The translations under genes and the position numbers were made by a program. From contig NC_083406.1 in the NCBI RefSeq assembly GCF_020745735.1, positions 72,951,164 through 73,015,163 of the forward strand: a stretch of 64,000 bases of DNA, in the 5' to 3' direction. The notes beneath the pieces are model-generated. The model was given only the letters and a program-made list of their open reading frames with translations. It did not search any database and was not told the origin of the DNA. Numbering within the stretch: the stretch's first letter is position 1; each line of letters starts with the position of its first letter. This document shows, piece by piece, positions 14,070 to 63,377 of this stretch. The DNA comes from Hemiscyllium ocellatum. Lineage: Eukaryota.

Positions 14070-14831
14070 TGTGTCGATGCTGTCACTTTTAAAAAGGTTA
14101 TTTTGTCCTGGGTTTTTTTTAAGAGAGTTTTTAAAGCAGGGATGCCAAAGGGTTTTGTCCTGAATCAAGTGTCTTTTTTTAACAACAGAAGGTGAGTGGC
14201 CAGTTCTCTCAGTTCAGGGTTTTCTAGTTGTTTTTAGCTGTAGCAGTCAGAAGATGTGTGAGTACCAGAAGGATTGCAAGCTTCACTAAATGATTCCTGA
14301 CTGACTTTCTCTGAAATCTCTCTGGATGTTCTTTCCTCCTGCCTCTGACAATCTGTGCTTGAATTTGCCTTTTTGCATTTATGGAAAAAGTGAGGTCTGC
14401 AGATGCTGGAGATCAGAGCTGAAAATGTGTTGCTGGTTAAAGTGCAGCAGGTCAGGCAGCATCCAAGGAACAGGAAATTCGATGTTTCGGCTTTCCTGTT
14501 CCTTGGATGCTGCCTGACCTGCTGCGCTTTAACCAGCAACAGATTTTCAGCTTTTTGCATTTATGGGATGTTACTGTTTTGGAGTTAATGAGTTAAGTTG
14601 CTGTATTGAATCAGTTAAGTTTTCCAATAGTAGGTTAATCTAAATTCTGTTTTCCTTGTGTCATATTTCAGCTTTAGGGTTTAAATAAATTCTGTTTTGC
14701 TTAAAGCTATGTGGTTTGACCAATGCTTCACAACTGGAACACTCACTTCACATCTGCCTTTAAAATAAAGGAACAGTTAGGGTCTAGGCTACCTTAACAT
14801 ATTTTGAGGGGATCTGCCCTGATCCATAACA
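14070..14831 (+). mobile_element. Solo LTR hosting a fold-back Penelope insertion
   Basis: TGT...CCATAACA termini and AATAAA near 14685. Confidence 0.55.
14385..14550. mobile_element. Fold-back Penelope-derived element (family A)
   Basis: Inverted arms 14417-14477 and 14492-14552 (2 mismatches); 16-bp TSD CTTTTTGCATTTATGG at 14369-14384 and 14551-14566. Confidence 0.88.
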
Positions 14832-14902
14832 GCTGTAGCCATTGTGTTGCTTGTGAAGTTTGAATGACTGCAAACATTGCAGAAATGTTTTATCCTTGTT
14901 TA

Positions 14903-15785
14903 TTTACGACACTAAGGTCAGTGGAGTTGTGGATAGTGACGAAGGATGTTGTAGATTACAGAGAAACATAGATAACCTGCAGAGCTGGGCTGAGAGGTGG
15001 CAAATGGAGTTTAATGCAGACAAGTGTGAGGTGATTCACCTTGTTCGGAGTAACGGAATGCAAAGTACTAGGCTAATGGTAAGATTCTTGGTAGTTTGGA
15101 TGAGCAGAGAGATCTCAGTGTCTATGTACACAGATCCTTGAAAGTTGCCACCAGGTTGACAGGGTTGTTAAGAATGCTTACAGTGTTTTAGCTTTTATTA
15201 ATAGAGGGATCGAGTTCCGGAACCATGAGATTATGCTGCAGCTGTACAAAGCTCTGGTGCGGCCGCACTTGGAGTGCTTTGTATAGTTCTGGTCACTGCA
15301 TTATAAGAAGGATGTGGAAGCTTTGGAAAAGGTGCAGAGGAGATTTACTAGGATATTGCGTGGTATGGAGGGAAGGTCTTACGAGGAAAGGCTGAGGGAC
15401 TTGAGGCTGTTTTCGTAAGAGAGAAGAAGGTTGAGAGGTGACTTAGTAGAGACATATAAGATAATCAGAGAGTTAGATAGGGTGGATAGTGAGAGCCTTT
15501 TTCCAAGTATGGTGACAGTGAGCACGAGGGGGCATAGCTTTAAATTGAGGGGCGATAGATATAGGACAGATGTCAGAGGTAGTTTCTTTACTCAGAGAGT
15601 AGTAAGGGTATGGAATGCTTTGCCTGCAATAGTAGTAGATTCGCCAACTTTAAATACATTTAAGTATTCATTGGTCAAGCATATGGATGTACATGGAATA
15701 GTGTAGGTTAGGTGGGCTTCAGACTGGTCGGCGCAACATTGAGGGCCGAAGGGTCTATACTGCGCTGTAATGTTCTATGTTCTAT
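14903..15785 (+). mobile_element. CR1 LINE 3' part
   Basis: WAERWQMEFNADKCEVIH and MRGDLVETYKII...FFTQRVVRVWNALP; (TTCTATG) tail. Confidence 0.9.
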
Positions 15786-17040
15786 AAAACCAGGGAATCT
15801 CAGACTGTAAATTTAGAAATTCTCGGACCCCTCATAGGCTACAAAATAGCAGTCTTTTATTGTTATCAAGCCGGCTGAGAGATTAATAGACAATAAATCG
15901 AGATTATCAATCAGAGATGACCTCAAATGTGCTAATAAATGATGTCTAATTCTTAGTGAAGAGGCAGCATAATATATACCCTTAATATGCGTAATCATAT
16001 CGTTTTTCTCCAATTCCAACCGTATAATGTTTCTAGTTTTAATTAGGTTCTCAGGAGGTATTTAATACATTAATGTTGCTTCACACATAAAATAAACAAT
16101 ACTGTTAATGTGGTGTTATTTGCATCACTGAGATAATACCTAGGTTACAATCAGTATTACGTTATAGTGACTGACTGGGAAACAGACAGATACTTCATTA
16201 TGCCAAGATTCATGCATTCCAATTCCATTCTTATGGTCACTGTGACTGCAGTAGCCATTTTAAACTTATCAGACAATTTATTATTGCAAGACGGAGATTT
16301 AAAATGGCTGCTTTTAATTGTTGGTTCCCCTATACTTCAAAGAAACCTTAATGACAAACCCACATTTCTAGGTACCAATGACCAGAAAGGTAAGCCAAAT
16401 ATCAATTGTGCTTTGACATACTTAACATTTGCCGAATTTGCCACAGAGTTTGAATTCAATTTTCATCTCTGATCAATAGGCAAGTTACCTTCGAGTGAAC
16501 TCAGTTCTAAGGGGATAGCATTTCACCTATCCCTTACCAAACAAAATAGCACGTCCCAGCTATGCAACAATGGGTATCATAAACTCAAGTTACCCACATA
16601 ACATAGAAAGTACTGCTGAAAAAGTGAGAGTGTGCTACCAATTGCAATATGGACATTCTAAAGATCCCATCAAATGTTGATACTGCTCAACAACTCCACT
16701 ACATTCAACTATACCCAGTAAGTTTGCAATCACTTAACTGATCCAAAGATAATTTAGAGCAGATAAAATTGATTTCAGAAGCATCTTAAAAAAGAGAAAA
16801 GATGAAAGACAGAATTGTAGGTGGAAAATCCAGTGCTTTACACCTAGACAACACAAGGCATGGCTATATTGGTTGGAAGATGATGAGACAATTAGGAGGG
16901 ATACAAAAAGGTCAAGTCTGGTGATAGCAAATGCATGCATGAGAGTTTCCGTGGTAGATTAGCAGAGATAATCATTGAGCCAGGTGAACTATATAGATGT
17001 GGAAATACATAGCCTTAGTGATTCAACAGAGTTTTAAAAC

Positions 17041-18088
17041 TTTATTCATGGGATATGACGAAAGCTGGTCAGCATTTCTTGCCTTTGCCTCAATGTCTTT
17101 CAGAAATTGGTAATGAGTAGCTTTTTTGAACTGCTGCAGTTCCAGCATTGTTCAGGAGGGAGTTATAGGATTTTGACCAAGAAACCACAAAAAAAAGTGA
17201 TATAGTTCCAAATCAAATGGCATTTAGCACGGAACTTGGCATGTTGCTGCAGTGTCTCTTGAAGATGGTCCACACAATGGCTACTGAACATCTATGGTGG
17301 AGAGAGAGTGGGTATTTGGGAATATGATGGGAATCAAGAGGACTGTTTTATCCTAGATGGTATCAAACTTCTTCAATGGTGTTGGAACTGTTTATCCAGA
17401 CAAATGGGGAGTATTCCATCATCCTCCTGAGCTGTGCCTTGTAGATGGTGGACAGGCTTTGGGGAAATCAGGAGGTGAGTTACTCACTGCAGAATTCATA
17501 ACCTTTAGCCTGTTCTTGTAGTTACAAAATTCAGTTTCTGGTCAATGGTAACTGACAGGATGTAGATAATGGGGGCTTCAATGATGTTAATGTCAATGGT
17601 AATGCCTCCAAATTTTGTTGTGTTTGAAAATAGACTGCTTCAATATCTGAGGAATCACAAATGGTACTGTACGTTGTGCAATCATCAAAAATCCCTAGAC
17701 CTAAGGTAATGATGGAGCAAAGGTCATTGACGGAGTAGCTGAAGATATTTGGTCTTGTGAAGCTACCCTGTGGAACTTTTGCAGAGATGTCCTTGACCCA
17801 AGATGTTTGATCTCCAATTTGATCCAATGGTTGTTAAATTTTTATTACTTGTTGCTTATGTTCTTTGGCACGCATGTAGTTCTGTTCCGAGAATTCACCA
17901 GATTGACACCTCATTTTTAGATATGCCTGGTGCTTCTCCTGGCATGCCCTCCTGCACTTTCCATTGAACAAGGATTGATTGGTTTGGTGGTAATGGTTGT
18001 GTGGGGATATGCCAGGCATGAGGTTGTAAATTGTTTTGGAGTACAATTATTCTGCTGTTGATGGCCCAGACTATTTCATGGATGCCCA
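17041..18088 (-). mobile_element. Decayed LINE (second family) with RT relic
   Basis: ORF 17531-17827 DISAKVPQGS...IFSYSVNDL...IFDDCT. Confidence 0.7.
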
Positions 18089-18089
18089 A

Positions 18090-20665
18090 TTTTTTTATGC
18101 CACAAAAATTGAATGGACTTTGTTGATCCCCTGAACTACCTCTCTTAGAATTGATTTGTGTTGCTTTGGGACTTCAACTTCACTCACTTAAATAGATTTC
18201 TCTAGAGTCAAGTCTTCTTTGGACTGCAATAATTCTGACAAAGACTCATCAGCAGATCCTGCAAAATTTCTTTTGAAATGAATTCTGATTTTATATCATC
18301 ACCAATCTATAGTGATTGTTAATTAAACATTATGGATTTCTCATTGATGCTGAACTCTTTTATTGAATCTTGCTCTTTCAAGAGGTTTAAGTAATTCTCA
18401 AAGGCTTCCATTAACTCTTCAAAAATATTTGTTGCTTCTTTTACCCCTTGGTGAGCGATAACACCACTATCTATATTTCAAATTGTGTCTAGTCATGCAT
18501 TTATGTCTTCAGTTTTTAACCTATTAGCTCATTTAGATATTATTCTGTATTTCAGAATTACTTTCTCTAAGACGTCCAATTCTGTATTCCATTTGGCCCA
18601 ACACTGAAAATAAGTCCGATGCCATGTTGTCTAAATTCAAAATATATTTTGCTAAAATACTTTTTTTTTGCAGTAACAGTAGTTTTGTTGCTCTAAAATT
18701 CAGTCATAGGATATGGGCATTGCTAGATAGGTTAGCTTTTATTGCCTATTCCTAATTACACTTAAGAGGCTGTTGGTGAGGTACCTTCTTGAATTGCTGT
18801 GGTGTTAGTATATTTCTAATGCTGTTAGGGAGGGAATTCCAGGACATTGATCCCGTGACAATTAAGTGATAGTGATATTCCAGATCAAGACAATGGGTAG
18901 CTTCGAGAGAAACATGCAGGTGGTGGTTATCTCATCCTTATCCTTATAGGTGAATGTTTTGCATGACAAGAAGGTGATGTCGAAGGAGCCTCAGTGAGTT
19001 TCTGCTGTGCATCTTGTAGATAATACCCACTGCTGCTGATATGCATTAGTGATGGAGGCAATGAATGTTGAAGATAGTGGATATGGTGTTAATCAAGCAG
19101 GCTTTTTTGTCCAGGATGGTGCAGAGTGTTGTTGGAGTTGCACTCATTCAGGCAAACCGGGTGTATTCCACCACACCCCTGACTTGTACGTTGCAATTGG
19201 TGAACAAGCCTTGGGGAATCAGGAAGCATGTTGCCTTGGACCCTCTATCATAGCCACTGTGGTTAAATGGTTGGTCTGGTCAGTTCCTAGTCAATGGTAA
19301 TCCCCAGGAAGCTGATGGTAGGGGATTCAGTGATGGTAATGCCATTGAATGCCAAGGGTCGATATTTGGATTTTCTTTTGTTTGAGATGGTCATTCCATG
19401 GCACTTGTGTGACACCAATATTGCTTTTCACTTACCCGCCAAGCCTGAATGTGTCCAGATCTTGCTGCATTTGGGCACAGAATGCTGATGTTCTGCTGTG
19501 TGGTGGGTTTTTCTGTTTTGCAGCTAATTGGAAGATTTTGATATATTTTTCAGCTCCACAGTATGAATCCCACGATCACAGTTTTATTAAATGATTCCCA
19601 CTTTGATCAACAGTTTTACTGAATAACTCCCATTGCTTCTGGTTTAAATAAATTATTCCTGACTTTACTGTGGTTTTTATTATGGATGACTGCCTTTTCT
19701 GCAGTCTGACTAAAGTCTCCCAAATGTTCTGTCCCTTTTAGATGAGATTTGCTTCAGCTTTTAATCTGCACAACATTGTGGAGGCAGCAATTAAAGCGAC
19801 AATGTCCCCAAGTCAGTGACCTCAGGTTGATATTCTTTTCCCCGTCCTTTACTTCCATTACTGTCGCTATGCTGCATGGTGCCCAGTTGTTCTGGTAATG
19901 TGCTTCTTTTGAGCTCTAAATAATTTTATTGTCTTCTCACTTTTTCAGCTCGGATTGCAGCACATTTCTGAATGTGTCACCAGGGATTTTAAGCCTTATT
20001 CACAGAGCTTCTGACGACAGTTCGCTAGCTGCTCAATTTTGACTCGTGTTCACTCCCACAGACCACAGTCTTGTGCTGCAGCCTATATTTCTTTTGGCAC
20101 TACTTATTCTCCTTCTCCAAGGAGTGGCTAACTCCCCTGTGTTTCTTTACAGGTCTGAAATGCTTTTATTTTATCATTCCACGTTGAGGACTGACATGAG
20201 AGGTTTTTCTATAGGATGCTTAAATGATCGGCTCTTTCCTACTGCTGACTGTGCTGGATGAGCAGGCAATTTAAAGCTGAGTGTGAAGATTTCACATCCC
20301 TGCTCACCACATAATGTAGGAGCACCAAAATCAAATCCACAATGCTCCCTCCCATGTTGTACAGGGTGCCAGTTCACCACACTGACTGGACTGCTGCTCC
20401 TGATGAAGGTTGCTGGCACCATCCTCTTTAAGTGTTGGAAACTTCAGGGCCTACTTGGTCTTGTATAGCAATAAAACTGCCCGGTCTAACAAGAAAAGTC
20501 TCTTGTGGTTAACAAGACTTAATTTATGTATGTTAGCTATTAGTTGCTGGTCATATAGATATAATAGATGTTGTTCAGAGACTTTGGAGAGGACCAGATG
20601 CTCGGTCTCATGCCTTTGAGATCTAAGTTGTTCTGCCCACACCTCCATACGGCACTATTATAACA
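18090..20665 (-). mobile_element. Decayed Gypsy LTR retrotransposon copy A (gag relic, upstream region, possible LTR at about 20462-20665), interrupted by a LINE
   Basis: Minus-strand LERARFNK and ADESLSELLQSKEDLTLEKSI at about 18190-18385; colinear similarity with 46200-47700. Confidence 0.6.
18700..19487 (-). mobile_element. LINE 3' fragment (second family)
   Basis: Same tail and ORF2 end as the 17041 copy. Confidence 0.65.
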
Positions 20666-20696
20666 GGTAATCTGATGGTAGTCCTCCTTTTTTTAA

Positions 20697-21025
20697 ATTT
20701 ATTCGTTCACAGAATGTGGGCATCATCAGTGAAGCCAGCATTTATTGCCAATCCCTAATTGCCCCAAGGGCAGTTAAGAGACAACCACATTGTTGTGCAT
20801 TTGGAGCTACATATGGACCAGACCAGGCATGGACAACAGATTCATTCCCAAAAGAACATTACTGAACCAGATGGGGTTTTTCGAACAACGGTGCCATCAT
20901 TAGACTCTTAACTTCACATTTATGTTGAATTCAAATTCTACCATGTGCCATGGCAGAACTTGAACCCAGGTCCACAGAACACTACCTAGATCTCTGTCTA
21001 ATGATAATATCACTAGGCCATCGCC
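20697..21025 (-). mobile_element. Short repeat sharing the second LINE family's tail; related copies at about 23391-23760 (-) and 24120-24450 (+)
   Basis: The blocks gccagcatttattgcc..ccctaattgccc and cagttaagag.caaccacattg recur at 23391-23560. Confidence 0.6.
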
Positions 21026-21643
21026 CTTCCAGGACCATATACAACAATGCCCCTTCAAATGTTTTTGTTAGTTCAAATCTTGGGCAAAATCTGCAGAAAA
21101 CAGTCACATGCTGACAAAATGGATACTACATGCAATCAGTTAGATTTATCTTGAGTATAGATTCTGAATATATTAAAGAAGCTGAAACTTCAGGCCAATC
21201 TGAATTGCGTAGCATAGTAATTCACTATAATGTCCCACGCTGCCTTATTGCATTCTTGTCTATTTGTCACTGGGTAAGGTGACTTCTTAAAGTCTCACTG
21301 AATAATTTGTCCTGCAGTTTCAAGATTTGTCAGTTTTCTAAAGCTGGCTGGGAAAACATCACAGGGCCTATTTAGGAATATTATCAGTAAAATTAATAAC
21401 AGGAACATTTGTCCTGTTAGTCATCCCTGAAGGATATCAAGGTTTTTACAGAAAGGATCTGTGGAGAGCAACACACAATGACCTCCTTCAGATCAACCCT
21501 CTTCCATCAATGGTTTTCTGGCATGATACATGGTGATTGCAGAGCTTCTGATATACCAACTTTTCTGTTCAAAGTTTGTGAGAAGATTTGTAGCTCAGGT
21601 GCTCGTTGTTGTGGTTCTGTTCGCCGAGCTGGGAGTTTTTGTT

Positions 21644-21683
21644 GCAAACGTTTCGTCCCCTTTCTAAGTGACATCCTCAGTGC
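21644..21683 (-). ncRNA. Minimal hammerhead ribozyme motif (family B), core intact
   Basis: gca-CTGAGGA-t-gtcactt-aga-aaggggac-GAAA-c-GTT-tgc. Confidence 0.72.
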
Positions 21684-22533
21684 TTGGGAGCCTCCTGTGT
21701 AGCGCTTCTGTGCTGATTCCTCCAGCATTTATATTGGTTTGAATCTGCCGCTTCCAGTTGTCAGTTGCTGTCCGCTGCAGTGGTCGGTATATAGGGTCTA
21801 GTTTGATGTGTCTGTTGATAGAATTTGTGGATGAGTGCCATGTCTCTAGGAATTCCCTGGCTGTTCTTTGTTTGGCCTGCCCTATAATAGTGGTGTTGTC
21901 CCAATCGAATTCGTGTTGTTTATCATCTGAGTGTATGGCTACTAGGGTTAGCTGGTTGTGTCGTTTCATGGCTAGTTGGTGTTCATGGATGCGGGTTGTT
22001 AGCTGTCTTCCTGTTTGTCCTATGTAGTGTTTTGTGCATCCATACATCAGGAGCATTTCTGAACTGACAACCAGATGGCTGCGATCACTAGGACTCATAA
22101 CAGCACAAAAACCAACAGCCACTCTCAGACAACAACTCACCAGGACAAAGGACCCGATACCCAGCAGGAGCAAAACCAACATAGTGTACAAAATCCCATG
22201 CACAAAACACTACATAGGACAAACAGGAAGACAGCTAACAACCCGCATCCATGAACACCAACTAGCCATGAAACGACACGACCAGCTATCCCTAGTAGCC
22301 ATACACTCAGATGACAAACAACACCACTATTATAGGGCAGGCCAAACAAAGAACAGCCAGGGAATTCCTAGAGGCATGGCACTCATCCACAAATTCTATC
22401 AACAGACACATCGAACTAGACCCTATATACCGACCACTGCAGCGGACAGCAACTGACAACCGGAAGCGGCAGATTCAAACCAGTATAAATGCCGAAGGAG
22501 TCAGCACAGAAGCGCTTCACAGGAGGCTCCCAA

Positions 22534-22573
22534 GCACTGAAGATGTCACCTAGAAAGGGGACGAAACGTTTGC
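22534..22573 (+). ncRNA. Minimal hammerhead ribozyme motif (family B), core intact
   Basis: gca-CTGAAGA-t-gtcacct-agaa-aggggac-GAAA-c-GTT-tgc; stem I gca/tgc and palindromic ACGT in place of stem III. Confidence 0.75.
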
Positions 22574-23881
22574 AACAAAAACTTCCAGCTGGGCGAACAG
22601 AACCACAACAACATTTCTGTTGCAAAGTATTTTCTCTCTTTCCACAAACCACTATTTCTCTTATAAAAATCTATTGAACAGCTAATGCAGGACAAAATAA
22701 TAATAGATTGATATACCAGGCACCATTTTTGCTTTAAAAGGCACAAACAGGTACTTAGCAACACATTACCCTTTATAGATACCTTGTAGCTTGGTTTGTT
22801 TATTCCTATTGCAAGCTACTTGCAAAGTATTTATTTCATGAATAAAACTAGATTTAAAAAAATCTGGGGAATTTAACTGCAAAGGGCTTAATTGCATTTC
22901 TCCAGGATACATTTTACTGGATTTTTTATTAAAGCGAAAATGAGGTACATTTGTCATTTTTTCCTTCATTATCATTCTCAACATCATTGTTAAAAAATAT
23001 AGTGCTACCTTTCTCAGTGTGAAGGGAAGACTGTGACAGTACATTTCAAGACTTCTTTGACTTGGTGCACTTTGACACTTGGGCAAACAGAAACTGGCAT
23101 TGGAGTTCAAAACCATTGTTTCCTTCAGAGTACAGCTATGCTCAGGTGCTATCTCTGACTCTGTTTATCTTTCAAGAATTTTCTTACTATGTTTCATCTT
23201 CTACTTCCCCACCAGCAGGAAGCCTGCATTTGATGTGTTGATCTATGTTTCATTCCCCCTTCCATTTTAGTTTTTAGCACCTTCTTCCTCTGGGTCCAAT
23301 CAGGCGCTAGTTGTTCCTCACCTAAGTCTATAACTTTGATGTACTTTCTCTGTCTGCTTGCCACTAGCACTTAATCTATTTGCTGTTTCTTTTCATTCAT
23401 GGGATGTGACGTTACTGGCCAACATTTGTTGTTCATCCCTAAATGCCCTCAAAATAATTGACTTGCTTAGCCATTTCAGAGGACAGTTAAGAGTCAATTG
23501 CATTGTTATGGGTCTGGAGTCACATGAAGGTCGGAGTGAATAAAGATAGCAGACTTCCTTCCCCAAAAGAATATTAGTGAGTCAGAATGATTTTCAACAA
23601 TAATCCATAATGGTTACTATAGTAATAATTACGGAGAACAGTTTTATATTTGAGCATAATTAACTGAATTTGAATTATGCCATGTGCCACATTTAAAATA
23701 CTTTCCCCAGAGTGTGTGCTGTGGAGTATTAGTCCAGCGACATTACCACCATGTCACTTTCCCCATGTCATCCACCCGAGTTAACTTAGACCTTGTCTGC
23801 ATATGACCTTGTCTGTTGCTGTGTGACACAGTGGAAGGCTGACTACTAAAAGTCTGTATTCCTGTCTGTATTGCTGTATTT

Positions 23882-23972
23882 CTGGTGAAGGGCTTTTGCC
23901 CAAAATGTCGATTTTACTGCTCCTCAGATGCTGTCTGAACTGCTGTGCTCTTCCTGCACCACTAATCCAGAT
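23882..23972 (+). mobile_element. Penelope-derived short element (family A) starting at a decayed hammerhead
   Basis: CTGGTGA-a-gggc-tttt-gccc-AAAA-tgtcga followed by the family A body. Confidence 0.7.
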
Positions 23973-27740: not shown

Positions 27741-27907
27741 GACAATAGCAGCTGTTATTCGATACCTCCCAAGACAGATTGTTATGCAGGAACCATGAAC
27801 TCACCATTTGAAAAAATATAGAAAACACAGCGCAGTACAGGCCCTTTGGCCCTCAATGGACCCCTTTTGGATGGACCCCTTAACCATTTGCTCAACATTG
27901 CACATAG

Positions 27908-28100
27908 GAGAAAGTGAGGACTGCAGATGCTGGAGATCAGAGCTGAAAATGTGTTGCTGGAAAATCGCAGCAGGCCAGGCAGCATCCAAGGAACAGGAGA
28001 ATCGACGTTTCGGGCATGAGCCCTTCTTGAAACGTCGATTCTCCTGCTCCTTGGATGCTGCCTGACCTGCTGCGCTTTTCCAGCAACACATTTTCAGCTC
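27908..28100. mobile_element. Fold-back Penelope-derived element (family A)
   Basis: Arms 27940-28011 and 28029-28100 (3 mismatches); 17-bp TSD CTCA(A/G)CATTGCACATAG at 27891-27907 and 28098-28114. Confidence 0.88.
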
Positions 28101-28139
28101 AGCATTGCACATAGACTCACATCTCTGTTAGAGATTCCC

Positions 28140-48292: not shown

Positions 48293-49197
48293 TTCATAGC
48301 TCCTTGAAAGTGGAGTACCAGGTAGTGAGGATAAAGAAGAAGGCGTTTGCTATGCTTTCCTTTATTGGTCAGAGTTTTGAGTATAGGAGTTGGGAGGACT
48401 GTTGTGGCTGTACAGGACATTGGTTAGACCACTGTTGAAATATTGCGTGCAATTCTTGTCTCCTTCCTATAGGAAAGATGTTGTGAAATTTGAAAGAGTT
48501 GTGGTTCTGTTCACCGAGCTGGGAATTTGTGTTGCAGACGTTTTGTCCCCTGTCTAGGTGACATCCTCAGTGCTTGGGAGCCTCCTGTGAAGCGCTTCTG
48601 TGATCTTTCCTCCGGCATTTGTAGTGGTTTGAATCTGCTGCTTCCAGTTGTCAGTTCCAGCTGTCTGTTGCAGTGGCCGGTATATTGGGTTTATAAAGAG
48701 TTCAGAAAAGATTTACAAGGGTTGGGGGGTTGGAGGGTTGGAGGATTTGAGCTATAGGGAGAGGTTGAATAGACTAGGGCTGTTTTCCCTGGAGCGTCGG
48801 AGGCTGAGGGGTGACCATATAGAGGTTTATAACATCATGAGGGGCACGGATAGGGCAAATAGACAAGGTCTTTTCCCTGGGGTGGGGGAATCCAGAACTA
48901 GAGGACATAGGTTTAGGGTGAGAGGGGAAAGATATAAAAGAGAACTAAGGGGCAACTCTTTAACGTAGAGTGTGGTACGTGTATGGAATGAGCTGCTAGA
49001 GGAAGTGGTGGAGGCTGCTACAATTGCAACATTTAAGAGGCATCTGGATGGGTATATGATAGGAAGGGTTTGGAGAGATATGGGCCAGGTGCTGCCAGGT
49101 GGGACTAGATTTGGTTGGGATACCTGGTCGGCATGGACGAGTCGGTCCGAAGGGTCTGTTTCCGTGCTGTCCATCTCTATGACTCAATGACTCTATA
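48293..49197 (+). mobile_element. CR1 LINE 3' part with a nested Penelope fragment
   Basis: LEDLSYRERLNRLGLFSLERRRLRGD and VRVWNEL; (ATGACTCT)-type tail. Confidence 0.9.
48501..48694 (-). mobile_element. Penelope family B 3' fragment with hammerhead (GAAA changed to AAAA)
   Basis: Homologous to 21605-21800; 8-bp TSD AAAGAGTT at 48493-48500 and 48695-48702; gca-CTGAGGA...ggggac-AAAA-c-GTC-tgc. Confidence 0.85.
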
Positions 49198-50535
49198 CTG
49201 TTAGCAACCAGCTATGATGACTTTGAGGAGGATCAGATCCTACACTGTTCTACGCACAAGTCCATTACATCATAGTGGGAGGTGTTTATGGTACTCATCA
49301 TTATTAACTCTTTCAGACCCAGATACAAGAGAATGCGATGCTGCATGTTCCTTCATGACACCATCTCTGTGGCCATCCAGCATAACAGTTCGTCACATAT
49401 TACACCTGTATTATAAGTCCTGCTGCTACAATCTGACTTGAGAATTGGTGACTTTGTACTGACTTTCAAGTTAGACAAATCGACACTTTCATCCATAAAT
49501 TTGAGCTTCAGCACATTGATTTGTATTCACAGCTCAACCTGGTGGGTTCTGCCAGGTTGATTTTTCTCTTCCTTCTACACAAAGCACATCCATATTAGCA
49601 TTGCTACTGTTAGAGCTGGGGGAGGGGGCATTGAGGGTAAAATATCAATAAGATAATTGGCAGAAAGGCTCATGGAAACCAAACTGGCAATGGAGAGAAA
49701 GAAGAAGACAAATTTATCTCAGAAAATCGATGTAGAATTGGCCTTAAAGCTGTAATTGTTTCTTTTTCAACGCTCCTATCTGCAGCTGGCTGTTGGACAC
49801 CCCTGGATAGCTGTTAAATACAAGCAAGTTTCGGAAATCGAACAACACTGTGTAATGGCTAGTCACGCACCTGGAATAGATTTTCATCACATTATAAAGT
49901 TTATTCCCATTTCTAACTGGGCCTCTGTTCAGCCACTGGAAGTGGATGTGATGTGCAAAAGAGGAGCAACATCGGCAGATCTCAGCACATTGTTTCCAGC
50001 ATGTTACCTCTTAGGAAGAGAAGCATGTACTGTGTAATTTACATAAAAATTGATTCCATGTTCAAATGCACTTTTAGTGTATCATATTGAAGCATCTTTT
50101 GCCTGATGGTTACTTGTGATATAGTGATCCCATGTCATTTTAAATGGAGGATATTTTCTTTTTCAACTTGTATAACTATCTTAAGTGCATTTCCTTGCCT
50201 TTTGCTGCTCTACCTTTGGAGCGGAAATTATTTCAGTCTATATGTAGCAAGTGATTTGACTTTCCAAAGTTCTGATTCTGACCTTAGCTTGTAAAAATCT
50301 CAGATCTAGCAACATAATAAGCATTCTATCTTAAATGTTTACTAACCTCCAGCCACAAACTCACAGTGCTGGATTACAAAACCTAAAATCCTACAGAGTC
50401 TTTGCATCATATGTGATCAAACCATCTATGATCGCCATTGGGAATGTGGCTGTTTTAACATTTCTTGCTTCAGGTTGTTCAACTTGCAGGATATTGAAAC
50501 CACCCATTATTAAAGCAAGGAGATATAGATGAATA

Positions 50536-50900
50536 GAGTCAACATTAGAGTGGAGCGGGAAAAGCACAGCAGGTCAGGCAGCATCCGAGGAGCAGGAAAA
50601 TCGACATTTTGGGCAAAAGCCCTTCATTGGGATTCCTGCTCCTCGGATGCTGCCTGACCTGCTGTGCTTTTCCAGCACCACACTAATCTTGACTCTGATC
50701 TCCAGTATCTGCAGTACCCACTTCTGTCTAGTTGATTTTAACTTTACTGCGAGTTTCCTGATGAAAGGCTTTTGTCCAAAACGTCAATTTTTCTGCTCTT
50801 CAGATACTGCCTGACCTGCTGTGCTTTTCCAGCACCATTCTAATCTTGACTCTGATCTCCAACATCTGCAGTACCCACTTCTGCCTAAATAAAGTTGAAT
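50536..50900. mobile_element. Penelope-derived family A element: one inverted arm plus two tandem 157-nt units
   Basis: Minus arm at about 50536-50630. Plus units with CTGCAGTACCCACTTCTG at 50709 and 50866. Hammerhead CTGATGA...AAAA-c-GTC at 50758-50785. Degenerate TSD ATATAGATG(G)AA(T/C)AGAGT. Confidence 0.82.
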
Positions 50901-52161
50901 GAATATAGATGGAACAGAGTGATGGCCAAATTATTCCAAGTTATTAGCCACCATCAGGTGCTTTGAGATTGAACTGTAATTTTATTGGAACAACTACTTT
51001 GCATTGCTAGACAAACTCAATACAAAGGTGAGCAGGTGGATAGGCCTATTTGAATTGAGTTTACCCAATCCAGTTAAAACAATCGCTTTGGGGCCAGTTA
51101 AAAACAGCTGATCTTGGTTCCTGAGCAGTTGGCTATGTCTAGCTGAAAACAGTTTGCATTGGTTGCTGGGTACCAGATGGAAGCAGTTCTTCCCAATTAC
51201 CAGGCAGGTAGCTTTAACCAACCTACTCAGAAGTGTCAAGACACATGTCTGGAGCAAATGAGACTTTGGCCTGGGCCTCCTGGCTCAAAGGTAGGCACAC
51301 TACCTCTAAAACAGCTTCTGTAAACAGGATGGTTTTGATTTCTTGACCTCTTGGTAGGGGTCCAGCATTCTCCTGCTGCGCCATTTGTTGGACCCCAGTT
51401 ACCAGTTCGATATTTTCTCAATGACTTGTTCAGAGATGTTATGACACATCTCCGGATCAGGCAGAACTTGAACCAAGGCTTCCTGATTCTGGGACACTAG
51501 CATTGCTCCACAGAGCCCTTCAATTACTAAATACCATGTATATGATAGGATACTATCCTTGGATAGAAATCTGCAAGTGATTTGTATTTATTTATATTCT
51601 GGATTTGAATCCATGTTCCCAGATTAATAGCTAGGGCCTCTAGTTTACTAGTCCAGTGACATTATCATTATAACACCACCTCCACCCTACTCCAAATACC
51701 AGGTATTTGAATTTTCACAGTCAAAAAAAAGCTGATATTAGTTGCTTGCCAGTCTGTCGGCAGTAGTTATCACTGGCTGAAGAAACAGTTATCACCTATT
51801 ATTTATTGTTGTTCCCAGTTGACCCCAATTTATATAAATAGAATTTAGTGAACATACCTCATACGAATTAAGCCCTTGAGCATGATAGTGTCCACAGTTG
51901 TGAAAAGCTAGTGAAAAGATACACTATCTGTAGCTCTAAATTCAAACTTTTATGTAGAAAACACATTTAAAGAAACATTGCATAATTCAAATAAATAAAC
52001 ACTTCCTTCCAAATAGGTCCAAGAAAATTAATGTTTCTTGTTAATGTCATGTATCTTCGTGGAGATATAATTTTACGTCATCTACTGTCACAGTTTTCAC
52101 AAAAAGCCAGGGATGTGGAGGGCACAGACAAAATCTACTGGTTGGTAGAGAGAAGAAAGGA

Positions 52162-52267
52162 GGAGAAAGTGAGGACTGCAGATGCTGGAGATCAGAGTCA
52201 AAAAGTGTGGTACTGGAAAAGCACAGTCAGTCAGGCAGCATCCAAGGAGCAGGAGAGTTGACGTTTC
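52162..52267 (-). mobile_element. Penelope-derived family A single arm ending near the hammerhead GAAAC
   Basis: Homologous to 5976-6080. Confidence 0.75.
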
Positions 52268-54109: not shown

Positions 54110-54341
54110 TATCTAAACCTGTCGCCTATTTTCTAAGCATCTGTGTCCCTCTGCTCCCTGCCCATTCTGTCTAGATACATCGTAAATGACACTATCGTGC
54201 CTACCTCTACCACCTCCACTGGCAATGTGTTCCAGGCACCCACCACCCTCTATGTAAAGAATTTTCCACACATATCTCCCTTAAACTTTCCCCTCTCACT
54301 TTGAATTCGTGACCCCTAGTAATTGAGTTCCCCACTCTGAG
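54110..54341 (-). repeat. 232-bp near-identical duplicate of the CR1 segment at 55237-55468
   Basis: 5 substitutions and no indels by manual alignment. Confidence 0.85.
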
Positions 54342-55157: not shown

Positions 55158-56368
55158 CATAGAACAAAGAACAAAGAAAATCACAGCACAGGAACAGGCC
55201 CTTCAGCCCTCCAAGCCTGCGCTGATCCAGATCCTCTATCTAAACCTGTCGCCTATTTTCTAAGCATCTGTGTCCCTCTGCTCCCTGCCCATTCTGTCTA
55301 GACACATCTTAAATGACACTATCATGCCTACCTCTACCACCTCCACTGGCAATGTGTTCCAGGCACCCACCACCCTCTATGTAAAGAACTTTCCACACAT
55401 ATCTCCCCTAAACTTTCCCCTCTCACTTTGAATTCGTGACCCCTAGTAATTGAGTTCCCCACTCTGAGAAAAAGCTTCTTGCTATGCACCCTGTCTATAT
55501 CTCTCATGATTTTGTAGACCTCAATCAGAACCCCCTCAATATCTGTCTTTCTAAGAAAATAATCATAACCTACTCAACCTCTCTCCATAGCTAGCACCTT
55601 CCATGCCAGGCAACATCCTAGTGAACCTCCTCTGCAACCTCTCCAAAGCATCCACATCCTTTTGATAATGTGGTGACCAGGACTGCATGCAGTATTCCAA
55701 ATGTGGTCAAACCAAAGTCCTATATAACTATAACATGACCTGCCTACTCTTGTACTCAATACCCCATCCGATGAAGGAAAGTGTGCTGTATGCCTTTGTG
55801 ACCAGTCTATTGACCTGCATTGCCACCTTCAGGGTACAATGAACCTGAACACTCAGATCTCTTTATATCAATTTTCCCCAGGGCTTTTTCATTTACCATA
55901 TGGTTTGCTCTTGAATTGGATCTTCAAAAATGCATCCCTCCACATTTGCTAGGATTGAACTTCGTCTGCCATTTCTCTGCCCAACTCTCAAATCTATCAA
56001 TATTCTGCTGCATTCTCTGACAGTCCCCTTCACTAACTGCTACCCCATCAATATGAGTGTCATCTGCAAACTTGCTAATCAGACCACCTGTAACTTCCTC
56101 CAGATCATTTATGTATAATACAAACAGCAATGGTCCCAACACTGATCCCTGTGGATCACCACTGGTCATAGTTCTCCATTTTAAGAAACTCCCTTCCACT
56201 ACTACTGTCCGTCTCCTGTTGCCCAACCAGTTCTCTATCCACCTAGCTAATACACCCTGGACTCCATGCAATTTCAATTTCTCCATCGGCCTACCATGGC
56301 GAACCTTTTCAAATGCCTTGGTGAAGTCCATGTGTATGACATCTTCAGCCCTTTCCTCATCAATTAAC
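55158..56368 (-). mobile_element. CR1 LINE RT and 3' end
   Basis: DFTKAFEKV, SGDPQGSVLGP and KFADD; (TTCTTTG/TTCTATG) tail. Confidence 0.9.
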
Positions 56369-56799
56369 TTTAGACGTAAGATTGGCAAGTGCCCAGTGCT
56401 GACAAAATTCACAGACTCAGATTAACAGCTCTCCTCTTTTTCCTTCCTCTGATACACCCTGAAACACTGTGACTTACATTTATTCTCATTACAATGCCCA
56501 AATGTCACGTTTACATTGAATAGATGTCTCCAATCATAGCATCAGAATCCCAAGTGTGAACCTTTTAATGAACGAAGTCAATCTGGTTCCTTCTTATGGA
56601 AAATAAACTCAGCAGCAGAATGCTCATTGCATTATCCATAGTGAACATTATATCATGCAGCACTGCACCTGCACATTTGGATGCCATGCAATGTCTTTCT
56701 TACAAATAGGTGAATGGGTGCAAATGTTACAATCAGCACTCCTGTACTGTCTACTTCCACACTCATAGGTTGGCATAGTGGCACGGATGGTGGCAAAGT

Positions 56800-56967
56800 G
56801 GCTCAGAGGGTGATGCAGTGGCACAGTGGTTAGCACTGCTGCCTCACAATATCAGGGATCAGGGTTTGATTCCAGCATCTGGTGACTGTCTGTGTGGAGT
56901 TTACACATTCTCCCTGTGTCTGCATGGGTTTTTGCCAGGTGCTCCAGTTTCCTCCCAAAATCCAAAG
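56800..56967 (+). mobile_element. V-SINE 5' half, truncated by an LTR fragment
   Basis: tRNA head and V-core. Confidence 0.8.
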
Positions 56968-57090
56968 TGTAGTGATTATAACAAAGTCAGCTAGGTGGAA
57001 CTCATAAAAATATGAGTTCCCTGACTGGGGCTGTTAACCTGGCCCAATCAGGGAACAGTGGCTGACAGATTAAAAGAGGTGTGTCAGGTA
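56968..57090 (+). mobile_element. LTR 5' fragment (Gypsy-type)
   Basis: Starts TGTAGTG exactly where SINE homology stops; CCAAT box and TATA-like ATTAAAA. Confidence 0.5.
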
Positions 57091-57399
57091 ATTTAGATAG
57101 AAAGAATCTCTACTGAGGGAATATGAGAAGCTCAGGGCTCAAAATAAAAGCAGACCGAAAAGGATCTTTGGATTGAAGCAAATTGGCACAGGATCAACAA
57201 GGTTAAAGAGATAAATGGCCATTGTTGATCACCATAAAAACTGAAATTTTATTTCAATTGAAATGCAGTTTAAAGTTTTCTGCCATCTCATCTGTAGTCA
57301 GAGAAATCATCTGATCTATCTCCGAGTAGCAAGAATAGTAGTCTACAGTGACAAGATGATCAGTTCCTACAAGGGCGAAGAGGTCTGCACCCAGGATAC

Positions 57400-57622
57400 A
57401 TGGGTATGGAATGAACTGCAGGAGGAAATGGTGGAGGCTGGTACAATTACAACATTAAAAAGGCATCTGGATGGGTATATGAATAGGAAGGGTTGAGAGG
57501 GATATCGGCCAAATGCTGGCAAATGGAACTAAACTAACTTAGGATATCTGGTCGGCATGGGCAGGTTGGACTGAAGGGTCCGTTTCCATGTTGAATGACT
57601 CTATGGCACTACCTATGACTCT
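57400..57622 (+). mobile_element. CR1 3' end
   Basis: VWNELQEEMVEAGTITTLKRHLDGYM plus 3'UTR. Confidence 0.85.
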
Positions 57623-57966
57623 AAACATTCAGCATTTTATAGACAATCTAGTAAAATAAGTGGCTAAACATCCATTTGCCAACAAGTTACAGAATTTTAT
57701 TCCCACAGTTTCTAAAAGTCCATCACTCCTTAAATCAGATTGCTGAAGTTTCACTAATTAGATCAGCTTAGAATAAATGGCCACCACAGATGAGTTAGAC
57801 TGATGGGTCTGTTTCTGTGCTGTATAACTCAATGACTCCATGACTGTTGGGAATGTCATTAGCCATTAATAGTTAGCTAGCAGGTACAATATGTACTGGC
57901 TGATTTGGTCCTTGATTTTATTGCCTTCCTCTGACTCGAATCAATTTTTGCATGGATGTTTTTTTT

Positions 57967-58269
57967 TAGATTAGATTATTTACAGTGTGGAAACAGGCCC
58001 TTCGGCCCAACAAGTCCACACCGACCCGCCGAAGCGCAACCCACCCATACCCCTACATTTACCCCTTACCTAACAGTACGGGCAATTTAGCATGGCCAAT
58101 TCACCTGACCCGCACATCTTTGGACTGTGGGAGGAAACCGGAGCACCCGGAGGAAACCCACGCAGACACGGGGAGAACGTGCAAACTCCACACAGTCGCC
58201 TGAGGCGGGAATTGAACCCGGGTCTCTGGTGCTGTGAAGCAGTAGTGCTAACCACTGTGCCACCGTGCC
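57967..58269 (-). mobile_element. Young V-SINE (HE1-like)
   Basis: A box TGGCACAGTGG, B box GGTTCAATTCC, many retained CpGs and an (AATCT)n tail. Confidence 0.9.
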
Positions 58270-60044
58270 GTGTTATGGTTAGCATCTTTCCTCAAAGTGC
58301 CTTTGAGATAATAACTCAATTTCCTTTGTAAACATGCCATCTTGTACTGTCATTTTACCCCTTTATGCCCAATACACTCATATGAAGAGGCTTTTTCATG
58401 CTTTCAGTGTCACCTGGCATTGCTACTTTTTACAACTTTTGGAGATTTACCTGTTGGATAATTTAATTGATTGGACAAAAGTGCCTGTCTATTGGATGTA
58501 ATGTCTCTGCTGACTCGATGACTTCTCGGGGATTTTGAGCTGCTGCTTCTTGTTAGATCTAAAATTATTAATACTCTGTCATAGTATACTCTGCATCCTT
58601 CAAGGGGAGTACTGCTCCCAACCACATGCAGCAATGTACATCTGTTTCCTTGGCTCGTATGTCATGTCTAGATATCTCCATAAACAGAGTAACATTCTTT
58701 GTAGACTTTGCAAAAGAGAATAACTGCTCGAGGAGAATGCTTTGAATTGACATGTAGTCTGACTTGTTTGTTGCTTTGTCTCTTCCAAGTAGGCATTCAT
58801 AAGAAGTTTCATCATCAAAAATAACAGCTGTGCACTCTTCCTGGCTCTGAACATCGTGTTGTTCTATTTGTGTTACCACTCTGGATGCTCCAAGTCCTGG
58901 CTTGCTGGTGTGACATTGCAGAGTGACATCATCATTTATATCACTGTATTTCCGCACTGATGTCATTTGTTGGTTGATTTTTGTGAATGTAGTTTCTTGC
59001 CCTGGGCCCCAATAGGATGCAACAATTCTGGAAGGCAGCTTCCCACCACGTACTCATGGATGGGGAACACATGTCAGCCCAGCCAATGATGCCCACATCC
59101 TGCAAGGAATAAAAATGACAAAGAAGTGCAGGTTGTTTGGATACAATGAGGACTTTGTTATCAACAGCTGAATGGACTTGTTATTTGATATGATCCACCA
59201 GCCTGGCATCACACTGGCACTGAGATTCATTTACTTATTTGTGTAATTTGCAGAATGACTTTTTAGCTTAGCAACAACATCCTGTCACTGGCAAACACAG
59301 CTCATGATGCTACTGCAGTGTAGCAGCATGAAACAGTTAGCATTACCTGCTGCTCAAATGTTTGCAATAAGTTACCCTTCGAGGGTATTTTGAGGTAAAT
59401 TTAGCTATGGTGCGTTAGGGCATTTGTGTGTTTGTGTATTTATATATATATATAAAATAAATAAAAATCCCAGAAAGGTGTCTTTGGTGGAAATATGTGA
59501 AAATGAAACTTAATAATAAGACCCTGTTTATTAATATATTAACAGAGATAAAGAAAATGTACATGTTCTGCGTCTGTTTCAACTCAACCTTATAGAACCA
59601 CTGATGGTAAAAGGGCAGGCAAGAGGGGACTGACGGTTGGTGGGGAGAGTTTGTTCCCAGGAAACAAAGGTATTTTGGCTGGAAATTTACAACCCACCAT
59701 GGGCATGTTGGCATTGACCATCATGATGTTGATATGCTATTTCTAAAGTGCTCTGTATGCCAAGTTAAAGCTACAGTTATTTAGTGCATTTTGTGACCTA
59801 AGGCCATTCCAAAGGGTTTGCAATAAATGGTACATTTTTGAATTTCAATCACCATTGAAATGTGACAGCATCTTTTCACATGTTCATTTTTTCACAATCA
59901 ACTATTCACCTTTCTGGGATTTCTGTACAATTTTGAGTTCCTCTGCTCTGCTCCTGCAAATATTGAACCTGAATGTTTCATGTCACCATTTTTACAGCTC
60001 TCTATACTAACATTCATTGTTATGATAGTCTAAGGAATTTCTGA

Positions 60045-60244
60045 GTAAAAAGTGAGGTCTGCAGATGCTGGAGATCAGAACTGAAAATGTGTTGCTGGTT
60101 AAAGTGCAGCAGGTCAGGCAGCATCCAAGGAACAGGAAATTCGATGTTTTGGGCATAAGGAAGGGCTTATGCCCGAAACATCGAATTTTCTGTTCCTTGG
60201 ATGCTGCCTGACCTGCTGCGCTTTAACCAGCAACACATTTTCAG
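60045..60244. mobile_element. Fold-back Penelope-derived element (family A)
   Basis: Arms 60081-60159 and 60166-60244 (3 mismatches, 6-nt loop); 15-bp TSD CTAAGGAATTTCTGA at 60030-60044 and 60245-60259. Confidence 0.9.
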
Positions 60245-61469
60245 CTAAGGAATTTCTGACACAATATTTGTCCTATTGGATTAAATAAAGGATAGAATAA
60301 TAATGGATGAGATGAATTCAGTCTTTTGTTGTCACCTAACCACCAATATTTATTGCCTGAGACCAGGCATGAAAACTAGGCACTTTGGCAAGGTAATAAC
60401 TTTCACCATGTGTGAAGCCTTTCCTAGTAAATCAGCACCTTTTTGAAATAGGGAAGGAAACTGGAAGAAATGTTCGGATTAGGATTGCACTTCAGGGGTC
60501 TATTTTGTTGTTGTACAGAATTGACTTCACATTGAGTTCAGATAAACCACGACTTTCCTATTCCCTGAGACAAAGTAAGCAATTTACTTACAGTTTATCA
60601 AAAATGTTTTTTTCTGAATGTACTGACTCCCACAATTGTGCAGCATTGCTGAATGATTTTATCAGATAGATTCATGAATGGAATGTTGCCCAATTCAAAT
60701 AACTAATCATATTCGGTTCACTGTAAGATCAAATATGCAGTATTGAAAGCAGTGAGCATAGCAACAATAATATTGCTTGAAGAACTCCTATGCTCCAAAT
60801 TATTTGTTAATATATACTGTCTATTTAAAGGGTATTATGGACCTCAAAAGACAGCTAGAAAATTCAATTTTTATAAACCACTGATTTATATTCCTATTTT
60901 GGAGTAATTTGTTTTCTCTTGCTTAAGATTCACTAAAGGACATGGTTCTTTGTAAGTCTGGCTTCTATTTAATTCAGTTTATACAATTACCAGAAAAGCC
61001 ATGTAATTAAAGGAGTTTCTGTGCAATTGTAAACCTTTTAAATGCTTAATAGGCACTGATGCCTGGGGCTGTGCTTACAGCTGTTTCTTGTGACATGCTT
61101 TGTGTGGCTAAGGCTGAAGAGAATTTGATCCTAGTGTTAAATTGCCTTTAATGGAGTTCTGGTACAGCCAGAACTCAGCATAAAGTTTACTAACAGCTTT
61201 ACTTGATTGAGCAGCTTTAACTAATCCAACAACTTTTCTCTGGGATTAAAACAGTTCCACATTGGAAACACGAATGCTCCAATAAATACAAAAAAACCTA
61301 ATGAATCAGGACAGCTCGAGGGATTTTACTATGATTAGTTTAAAATTAACCTGAGTAACTTGCTATAAAACTGTATTTAAATATACACAATTGATAAGGT
61401 ATACTAACAACATTCAATGATAAGACTTTCCCATTCAAAATTATATTCTCATTTGCAAAACAAAACCTA

Positions 61470-61802
61470 CAGAATCTTTAGAACCCATTCGGTGCACCGA
61501 TCCTCTTAAAGAGATCCCATTCAGAGCCAGCCCCCCTATCCTGTCCCTGTAACCCTGCAATTACCACAGCTAATTCACCTAGCCTGCATATCCCTGGTCA
61601 CTATAGACAACTTTGCATGGCCAATCCACATAACCTGCACATCTTTGGACTGTGGGGGGGAAACCAGAACACCTGACGGAAACCTATACAGACACAAGGA
61701 GAATGTGCAAAATCCACACAGACAGTCAGCCGAGGCTGGAATCAAACCGGGTCTCTGGCACTGTGAAGTAGCAGTGCTAACCACTGAGACACCATGCCAC
61801 CC
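61470..61802 (-). mobile_element. V-SINE (HE1-like)
   Basis: tRNA head and V-core. Confidence 0.82.
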
Positions 61803-62920
61803 AGAATCGCATTCATTCTGTTCTTTGCTTAAAGACAAGTCCAACTCACAACACCACAAACTCCAACATAGAAAAAGCAAGAAGATAATATGCAAGAAGA
61901 TAACCAGCCTATAATGGGATCAAACTGACCTGCCGCTAATGTGAACCACATTGTCTGTTGTTCTATACAAAGAAAGTTTGTACTTAACAGCTTTACTTTT
62001 TACCATTTTGAAATATTCGTCAAAACAAGAAATTTGGTAATTTAGTTAAATCCTAAATGCAGCACTGTGGATGATGCAACACACCTTACATTTGTTTTCA
62101 CATTCAATTTTAGATGCTTTAGTTGATAAAAATTCTCCACACTTGAGGTGTTGCTGATTCACACACAACAGCTCAGCAGAAGTGTGAATTAATTTAGAGC
62201 AATGTCTATTTTGATTAGAATCTTTCAGGTCCGAGTATTCCTGCAGACTAGGAATGTCCTCACCTTGAAGGTCAGACTGTGTTGAATTTGTTAATTAGAG
62301 TAGAACTACATTTGGAACGTTGCAGTTGATTTAATTTGCACTGAAAAATCAGCCAGACATCCCATTGTGATCATGAGTCAGTATGGAGAAACGTTGGACA
62401 AAGATATTATCACAAACAAATATAGAAAATGCTGCAATTCAGCACGACAGTTGGTATTGTGGAGAAAACAGACATTGATGCTTTATTTGCAGGTCTTTTT
62501 TTTTCATTCAGTTTTCCAGCCTGTGCAGTATTTTGTTTTTTTACAAGGATAGATTAGGTCTCAATGACTGATAGAAGCTTAACACAACATAAACGGAAAC
62601 TTTCAGCAGATGGGTAAAGGAATAAAACTGAGGGGCTAAATACACAGTTGAATAATAAAATAAGATTCAATAGTAGGGAAATAGCCCACTGGTGCCTCAT
62701 TGCAAAGGCAGTGAGTAACTGAATTATTCACAGCTGGAAGTGAGCTGAGATAAAAGAAAGAATGACTACAATGGGCCCTAATGATCATAGTTGAAAGGAG
62801 GGGCAGTCTGCTCAGGCTTCTGCTGCTGTACAGTACATACATGTGGCTTTGAGTGAGAAGAGGAAAAGAGTTTGCTTAATTGTAGACCTCTACATGATTC
62901 AATACCTTTCCAAATCCCAC

Positions 62921-63193
62921 GTTAAAAATCACACAACACCAGGTTGTAGTCCAACAGGTTAGTTGGAAGCACTAACTTTCTGAGCACTGCTCTTTCATCA
63001 GGTGGTTGTGGAGAATAAGATTGTAAGACACAGAATTTACAGCAAAAAACTTCTGTGTCTTACAATCTTATTCTCAACAACTACCTGATAAAGGAGCAGC
63101 ACTCTGAAAGCTAGTGCTTCCAAATAAACCTATTGGATTATAACCTGGTGTTATGTGATTATTAACTGGTCCAACACTGGTATCTCCAAATTA
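62921..63193. mobile_element. Fold-back Penelope-derived element (family C)
   Basis: Arms 62921-63035 and 63051-63166; 12-bp TSD TTTCCAAATCCC at 62907-62918 and 63194-63205; a hammerhead motif in each arm. Confidence 0.82.
62970..63004 (-). ncRNA. Minimal hammerhead ribozyme motif (family C); mutated twin at 63082-63116 (+)
   Basis: cac-CTGATGA-aa-gagc-agt-gctc-a-GAAA-g-TTA-gtg; the twin reads tac-CTGATAA...GAAA-g-CTA-gtg. Confidence 0.62.
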
Positions 63194-63377
63194 TTTCCAA
63201 ATCCCTACTGTCTTAAATCTTACACATCAGTGTTGTCCATAGGCTCCTGAACAGTTGCTTCACTGTAGGACAAATTATGAATTGGGACAAAATGGAGGTA
63301 CGTAAGCAGAACACTGCAATTATCATGGGTGATTTTAATCTGCCTGGTGGCTGGACAAATCAAATGGACAAGAATAG

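Follow-up and report, generated by a model that had tools for sequence, protein, structure and literature searches.

Six fold-back insertions in the genome of the shark Hemiscyllium ocellatum are probably ordinary integration products of the machinery of Penelope-like elements (PLEs). They lie in a 64-kb stretch of contig NC_083406.1, referred to below as the window, and all coordinates are positions in it. One insertion, P, is likely to have come from a coding element and the other five (A1, A2, A3, B and C) from short non-coding units, which are about 157 nt long in family A/B and also include family C. These non-coding units quite probably retain only a minimal hammerhead ribozyme, a reverse-transcription start region and a tail. 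The kind of element and the scars of its insertion have already been described; the window adds a clean set of natural cases to a mechanism already on record.

The insertions were detected by an inverted-repeat search, and their target-site duplications (TSDs) and arm ends were taken from direct reading and a script. A preliminary description of the window had reported six head-to-head insertions, each inside one TSD of 12-20 bp, and all six were found where it placed them. They are the only close inverted repeats in the window with arms of at least 40 nt lying no more than 700 nt apart, and the 3' ends of the element point outward in every one. Their parts are as follows.

14369-14566: insertion A1, TSD copies 14369-14384 and 14551-14566 (16/16 matching)
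14385-14490, minus strand: A1 long arm, with a 34-nt tail at 14385-14418
about 14491-14550, plus strand: A1 short-ended arm
21557-22628: insertion P, TSD copies 21557-21575 and 22609-22628 (19/20 nt, one mismatch and one indel)
21576-22039, minus strand: P tail-bearing arm, tail at 21576-21604
22040-22608, plus strand: P short-ended arm, 158 nt longer at its 5' side (22040-22197)
21650-21680, minus strand, and 22537-22567, plus strand: P hammerhead cores
27890-28114: insertion A2, TSD copies 27890-27907 and 28097-28114 (17/18 matching)
27908-28026, minus strand: A2 long arm, tail at 27908-27942
about 28027-28097, plus strand: A2 short-ended arm
50523-50920: insertion B, TSD copies 50523-50539 and 50903-50920 (17/18 nt long, decayed)
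50540-50628, minus strand: B inverted short-ended arm
50629-50902, plus strand: B direct part, about 1.7 tandem units of a 157-nt repeat, with a second hammerhead motif near 50757
60030-60259: insertion A3, TSD copies 60030-60044 and 60245-60259 (15/15 matching)
60045-60159, minus strand: A3 long arm, tail at 60045-60080
60160-60244, plus strand: A3 short-ended arm, bearing a 6-nt central extension
62907-63205: insertion C, TSD copies 62907-62918 and 63194-63205 (12/12 matching)
about 62921-63044, minus strand: C short-ended arm
about 63045-63193, plus strand: C long arm, tail at 63167-63193

Paired arms are 82-96% complementary, not identical, and overlap across 60-435 nt of element sequence. 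Inner end points and centres are different in every copy, with central spacers of 4, 17 and 6 nt in A1, A2 and A3, and contigs from sequencing runs place the fold-back junctions of other genomic copies at many positions. Sequence comparison upholds the three families first proposed as three lineages, A/B, C and P. Families A (14385, 27908 and 60045) and B (50536) share about 80% identity, and C (62921) and P (21576) have no sequence relation to the other families. Families A, B and C are non-coding. Insertions A1, A2, A3, C and P each contain less than one unit, and both repeats of the partial tandem in B open with a hammerhead-like motif.

Endonuclease-encoding PLEs leave insertions of this form. 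An inverted, 5'-truncated copy and a one-sided tail have been described for Penelope-like elements (Arkhipova et al. 2013), the tail being a 30-40 bp extension that is often present at one end only (Craig et al. 2021; Arkhipova et al. 2013). The head-to-head signature, within one TSD, is present in 6/6 insertions, as is a single tailed arm. Canonical PLEs of the Penelope/Poseidon type (Arkhipova 2006; Arkhipova et al. 2013; Craig et al. 2021) also share with the shark insertions heavy 5' truncation, TSDs that vary in length, a start region preceded by a minimal hammerhead (mostly incomplete in the shark copies) and partial tandems such as that of insertion B. A further likeness is the AT-rich flanks, which have been reported for PLE endonucleases and which surround other genomic copies of the shark families in run contigs. 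Canonical PLEs are, however, 3-kb elements with pseudo-long terminal repeats (pseudo-LTRs), whereas five of the six insertions here derive from short non-coding units and have arms of 60-150 nt.

The difference between long and short arms is the published Penelope "tail". That one arm keeps the family 3' terminus and the other stops short of it was confirmed by script, the outer ends being unequal in 6/6. The tail measures 34 nt in A1, 35 nt in A2, 36 nt in A3, 27 nt in C and at least 38 nt in B; that of P is 29 nt here and 37 nt to the family end, which in other genomic copies reaches 21568. Every fold-back combines exactly one tailed and one tail-less arm, which has a probability of at most 0.016 if the two strands chose independently. 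The one-sided tail is noted in the literature without an explanation there.

The end of the short arm is a fixed internal start site and is not set by microhomology, because five short ends of the A/B lineage (those of A1, A2 and A3, the inverted B arm and the solo copy at 23879) share one common column of the alignment. Similarly, the short arm of P and the solo copy of P end no more than 3 nt apart. Since solo copies (23879 and 48498) also end at this inner site, it is a genuine start site. The copies of these families that lie outside fold-backs are listed here; fold-backs account for about half of the families' loci in the window.

5979-6080, minus strand: solo family A copy with tail, 5' end at the hammerhead GAAAC, no clear TSD
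13592-13721, plus strand: solo B-like copy with tail and the whole hammerhead region, helix II mutated
23879-23967, plus strand: solo B-like copy ending at the inner (short) site, zero microhomology
48498-48690, minus strand: solo P stub with an inner-site end and a 3-nt overlap with an apparent 8-nt TSD
52161-52266, minus strand: solo A/B copy with tail, 5' end at the hammerhead GAAAC
54501: A/B fragment

In P, a 5-bp stem closes an AC-rich loop, and the inner end coincides with the 3' edge of this loop. RNA folds of single arms were no better than those of shuffled sequences. A candidate stem for A/B, in which GGAUGCUG of the body would pair with CAGCAUCU of the tail, is no more than a guess, its changes being wobble-compatible only, with zero compensatory pairs.

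The preliminary description noted that the end of the short arm overlaps the TSD by a few bases in five of the six insertions, and that L1 twin priming shows microhomology at its second priming site. The single alignment column speaks against a short end picked by microhomology in the manner of L1, but the microhomology itself is borne out: the overlaps CT, CTC, CT, CAAC and AGAGT were reproduced as 2, 3, 2, 4 and 5 nt. Next to the short arm, the match between the target and the continuing family sequence is 2 nt in A1 and A3, 3 nt in A2, 5 nt in B, 4 nt in P and 3 nt in the solo copy of P; C and the solo copy at 23879 have no match. A match of at least 2 nt at 6/8 inner-site junctions has p ~1.5e-6 if the site is fixed; with a 7-position start window the result weakens to p = 0.08, or p = 0.007 when matches of 3 nt or more are counted. 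Which bases match varies from family to family, which argues against a general endonuclease preference. Microhomology may help to align the primer rather than select the site. At the outer site, family A has filler bases and no matches, and P has a 6-nt similarity (CAAAGT) of ambiguous origin.

Both target strands most likely primed reverse transcription, as had been proposed from the sequence, and biochemical work supports this view. Purified anole PLE protein cuts and extends both target strands in vitro (Frangieh et al. 2024; PMC11167929). In the same study, an AC-rich stem-loop within the RNA contains two adjacent sites from which reverse transcription begins, and the sequence that separates these sites forms the tail. 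A dimer is the predicted form of the protein, the reaction does not depend on hammerhead cleavage, and a multi-copy RNA is the likely template. Start-site choice is the same on both strands and is made without target homology. The element studied, PAc (Poseidon of Anolis carolinensis), resembles the shark insertions in its priming on both strands, in its two adjacent start sites with a spacing equal to the tail and in an AC-rich stem-loop start downstream of the hammerhead. Its open reading frame (ORF) begins at hammerhead stem II, as in element P, where an ATG stands at the start of that stem, about 26-28 nt ahead of the predicted cleavage site. In neither case is an intact hammerhead needed in the product. 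The two systems differ in that PAc start sites lack target homology, whereas 6/8 inner junctions here share 2-5 nt, and in that the strands are alike in start-site use in PAc, whereas the shark fold-backs each divide a tailed and a tail-less arm between them. Moreover, the inner site of P is about 66-70 nt from the ATG, compared with 111-118 nt in PAc.

The insertions themselves speak to whether one arm was copied from the other. In three of the six (A3, P and B), the tail-less arm has a central extension (6, 158 and about 30 nt) and the other arm has the tail. Each arm therefore holds sequence that the other lacks, so neither was copied from its partner and an outside template was needed. Self-priming has been proposed for head-to-head Penelope repeats on the basis of palindromes at inverted junctions (Arkhipova et al. 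2013); a single cDNA (complementary DNA) that ends 3' in a palindrome would fold onto itself there and serve as the template of the second arm. Such a snap-back is an unlikely origin for the six as a set. It would account for centres that cluster at helix II, itself a small palindrome, and it suits A1 and A2, in which the long arm holds both the tail and the central extension and which are compatible with either dual-strand priming or snap-back. However, it does not provide for the arms of A3, P and B that have a central extension and lack the tail of their partners. Solo copies with an inner-site end mark a true start and not a stalled copy-back, and the symmetric helix-II hairpin that snap-back predicts is seen in none of the centres.

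Priming on both strands suggests a series of steps. A GIY-YIG endonuclease/reverse transcriptase, probably acting as a dimer, would nick the two target strands 12-20 bp apart. Element RNA would offer two fixed internal start sites, separated by about 30 nt, and each freed 3' end would prime at one of them, which would give one arm a tail of 27-37 nt and leave the other without; at the inner site, a few bases of primer-template pairing would often assist. Both cDNAs would end early, often near helix II of the hammerhead, and host repair would join their ends head-to-head and fill the staggered cut, creating one TSD. The shark mini-elements would presumably use a shark PLE protein in trans, and the cause of the cDNA stop points and the manner in which the centres are joined are likewise presumptive. 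Two template units, which the preliminary description took to be needed, may not be required. A multi-unit template is directly evident only in insertion B, with its ~1.7 tandem units, and one RNA may instead have been copied sequentially.

The reality of the palindromes was judged from contigs of public runs from the same organism (organism A) and from two related organisms (B and C). The available runs give short contigs that break inside repeats, from which junctions can be read and whole palindromes cannot. Single-TSD empty sites in relatives, a check named beforehand, were found for A3 and P. A 3.3-kb contig from run X9 (organism C) joins 60029 straight to 60245 and thus lacks exactly one TSD copy and the 200-nt palindrome A3. 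Likewise, a 1.4-kb contig from run X5 (organism B) joins 21556 straight to 22609 and lacks one TSD copy and the 1,033-nt palindrome P; this empty site also shows that CAAC was part of the original target. Insertion C is probably shared by organisms B and C, and hence older, because contigs of both enter it by about 24 nt from the left flank. In organism A, contigs of samples S1 and S6 reach 17-43 nt into insertions from both sides.

It is highly improbable that the fold-backs are chimeras of assembly or that each records two independent insertions that happened to fall back-to-back. The breaking of short-read contigs within every insertion would fit a chimera. Nevertheless, an assembly artefact is unlikely because the arms have diverged and both outer junctions are present in separate samples of organism A; complementarity of 82-96% means that the arms aged separately and are not products of strand switching. 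In addition, the single-copy targets of the relatives account exactly for one TSD and the whole palindrome. Two independent hits would leave nested duplications, and they would have had to coincide six times in 64 kb, while an abundant short interspersed nuclear element (SINE) in the same window shows no such pairing.

Two familiar sources of inverted repeats were set aside on structural grounds. L1 twin priming resembles the shark insertions in second-strand priming, in an inversion within one TSD and in short microhomology at the second site. In L1, however, the two segments adjoin on one RNA without overlap and the internal site varies, whereas the arms here overlap over 60-435 nt and the second site has a constant position, about 30 nt away from the first. 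A fold-back DNA transposon or miniature inverted-repeat transposable element (MITE) is at odds with outer ends that are unequal by 27-37 nt, with centres that differ and with TSDs of 12-20 nt.

Features are also shared with dispersed minimal hammerhead repeats and metazoan non-LTR retrozymes (Cervera and de la Pena 2014; de la Pena et al. 2020), and with Sm-alpha-type hammerhead SINEs. These too are short non-coding units of 150-300 nt, tandem (as in B) or dispersed; they carry a type I hammerhead that has almost no helix III (palindromic ACGU or AGCU), to which the mostly incomplete motifs here correspond. Minimal hammerheads have also been noted in pairs, on opposite strands and 100-700 bp from each other (Cervera and de la Pena 2014), and motifs are paired in this way here. 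In contrast to retrozymes, most shark copies are truncated within the ribozyme, only B is tandem, and it is the insertion scars more than the ribozyme that stand out.

Element P is a 5'-truncated coding element. The ORFs of both arms encode IVYKIPC...YIGQTGR...EH, a GIY-YIG-like motif, and the arms end 5' within or just upstream of the endonuclease region. Pfam returned no GIY-YIG match for these ORFs, even at E<=10, and the best ESM Atlas clusters were eukaryotic GIY-YIG fragments (score 0.90), which serve as a lead only. The right arm has a 20-nt deletion (22311-22330, compared with left-arm 21880-21920) in which the EFDWDN codons are lost and the frame is shifted. Downstream of the motif, P has CUGA(A/G)GA, a 7-bp helix II with one mismatch and then GAAACGU.

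The description of the insertions as hammerhead-bearing is true in part only: the two P arms match the core sequence, which is truncated in family A and mutated in B and C. Family A arms start inside the ribozyme, keeping helix II and GAAAC and missing the 5' half of the core. In the B and C copies the core or helix II is mutated; in a consensus of C built from the reads of further copies, helix II is perfect again, with 5 bp (near 62960). A scan of the window for a strict core with helix II found no intact motif. The looser pattern CTGANGA...GAAAC matched the two P arms only, a number not above chance alone, as 22/100 shuffles gave at least two matches. Rfam yielded zero hammerhead matches across the whole window at the gathering threshold and none at E<=10 in two sub-regions. 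This silence is expected because Rfam hammerhead models require helix III, which PLE-type motifs lack, and the motifs were therefore judged by hand. Most of the inserted hammerheads appear truncated in the ribozyme and are predicted to be unable to self-cleave. With hammerhead cleavage also dispensable in vitro, the idea of a ribozyme-linked route to genomic hairpins is not supported.

The remnants of the ribozyme do coincide with the places where copies begin. Two solo copies (5979-6080 and 52161-52266) and the A2 short arm (28027) have their 5' starts at the hammerhead GAAAC, which precedes the predicted cleavage site by about 8 nt, and the direct arm of B starts at the predicted cleavage site itself (GATT, ~50629). 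This clustering points to a hot spot around helix II and GAAAC, and pausing at the helix-II hairpin may be its cause.

A separate observation concerns the family B hairpin at 50565-50666, which matches the Rfam model mir-1791 on both strands (E ~1e-7; 43 bits, gathering score 75) and, more weakly, other microRNA hairpin models. The mir-1791 match is most likely one that any long hairpin would give. Fold-backs such as B could be sources of hairpin RNA.

Several observations weigh against the assignment of the six insertions to PLE machinery. In none of the runs, all of which consist of short contigs, does a read or contig extend across an entire palindrome. The window contains no reverse transcriptase gene. 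The GIY-YIG call for P is a lead that draws on YIGQTGR, recognized by eye, and on the language-model score of 0.90, and the mobilization of A, B and C in trans by a PLE protein is suggested by shared architecture only. The in vitro work predicts neither the pairing of one long with one short arm in 6/6 nor the microhomology. Finally, the long arms of A1 and A3 share an A, and their short arms a G, at one CpG (14440/14523 and the 60107/60219 region, GCTGC[A/G]CTTTAACC); the other four differences are private to single arms. This arm-specific base, a single informative site, could have arisen by parallel decay of the CpG, from two template units or from a structured master.

Such a master would be a palindromic unit, a hairpin SINE or a MITE-like element, that retrotransposed whole and had its centre altered later by deletion. 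This origin is quite improbable, and there is similarly little likelihood that the end of the short arm is the fixed 5' end of a master's RNA. The three family A short arms do stop at the same base, a deletion in a centre like that of A3 could have produced the centre of A1, and the shared A and G also speak for a master. On the other hand, each of the six copies has its own centre and inner ends, and these vary in many other genomic copies as well. Three lineages (A/B, C and P) have this architecture in common, with a 1-kb coding fragment among its instances, and non-palindromic solo copies have the same short end. A hairpin transcript made by read-through would lack a precise 5' end at that site, and parallel decay is plausible at a CpG.

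Integration by PLE machinery leaves the constant pairing of arms to be accounted for, and a tentative, rather doubtful proposal is that the two start sites are coupled. A single dimeric particle would use the inner site on one strand and the outer site on the other. With equally modest likelihood, a telomerase-like pairing of primer and template over 2-5 nt might assist priming at the inner site, and the two cDNAs might derive from different units of a multimeric RNA. Coupled use, if true, would explain why each fold-back has exactly one tail, and the shark mini-elements would then be a natural read-out of a step unresolved in vitro.

Penelope-like elements have been reported in all vertebrate lineages surveyed, the elephant shark genome included. 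The suggestion that the short, stereotyped form may be undescribed in sharks stands in that no paper on these mini-elements in sharks was found; the architecture and the tail, by contrast, are already described. Word depths for families A, C and P reach millions in all three organisms, and, although word depth is not copy number, as the tool itself states, this is consistent with the three families being very abundant there.

A tRNA-derived SINE provides a control. Its copies in the window, which have very high word depth in all three organisms, are listed below.

56818-56967, plus strand: tRNA-derived SINE copy
58118-58263, minus strand: tRNA-derived SINE copy
61577-61790, minus strand: tRNA-derived SINE copy

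This SINE is equally abundant and yields no tight fold-backs in the window. The inverted pair at 56818-58263 was considered as a fold-back and rejected, as it consists of two separate insertions of tRNA-type SINEs 1.15 kb apart. Contigs from all four runs join either 60224-60248 (the 3' region of family A) or 61788-61803 (the SINE) to the start of C at 62921, with unknown letters between the two parts. Family C may often insert beside other repeats, or the joins may be an effect of how short contigs are placed.

The integration of PLEs is still only partly understood, and these insertions are natural records of complete events, some with the empty site preserved. They are consistent with the in vitro result of 2024, in which two internal start sites serve the extension of both target strands, and at least half of them speak against simple self-priming. 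Two details go beyond the in vitro work: the presence of one tail per insertion and the short microhomology at the inner site. For the genome that carries them, elements of this kind have seeded many hairpins of 60-450 bp that may give rise to double-stranded RNA and to instability.

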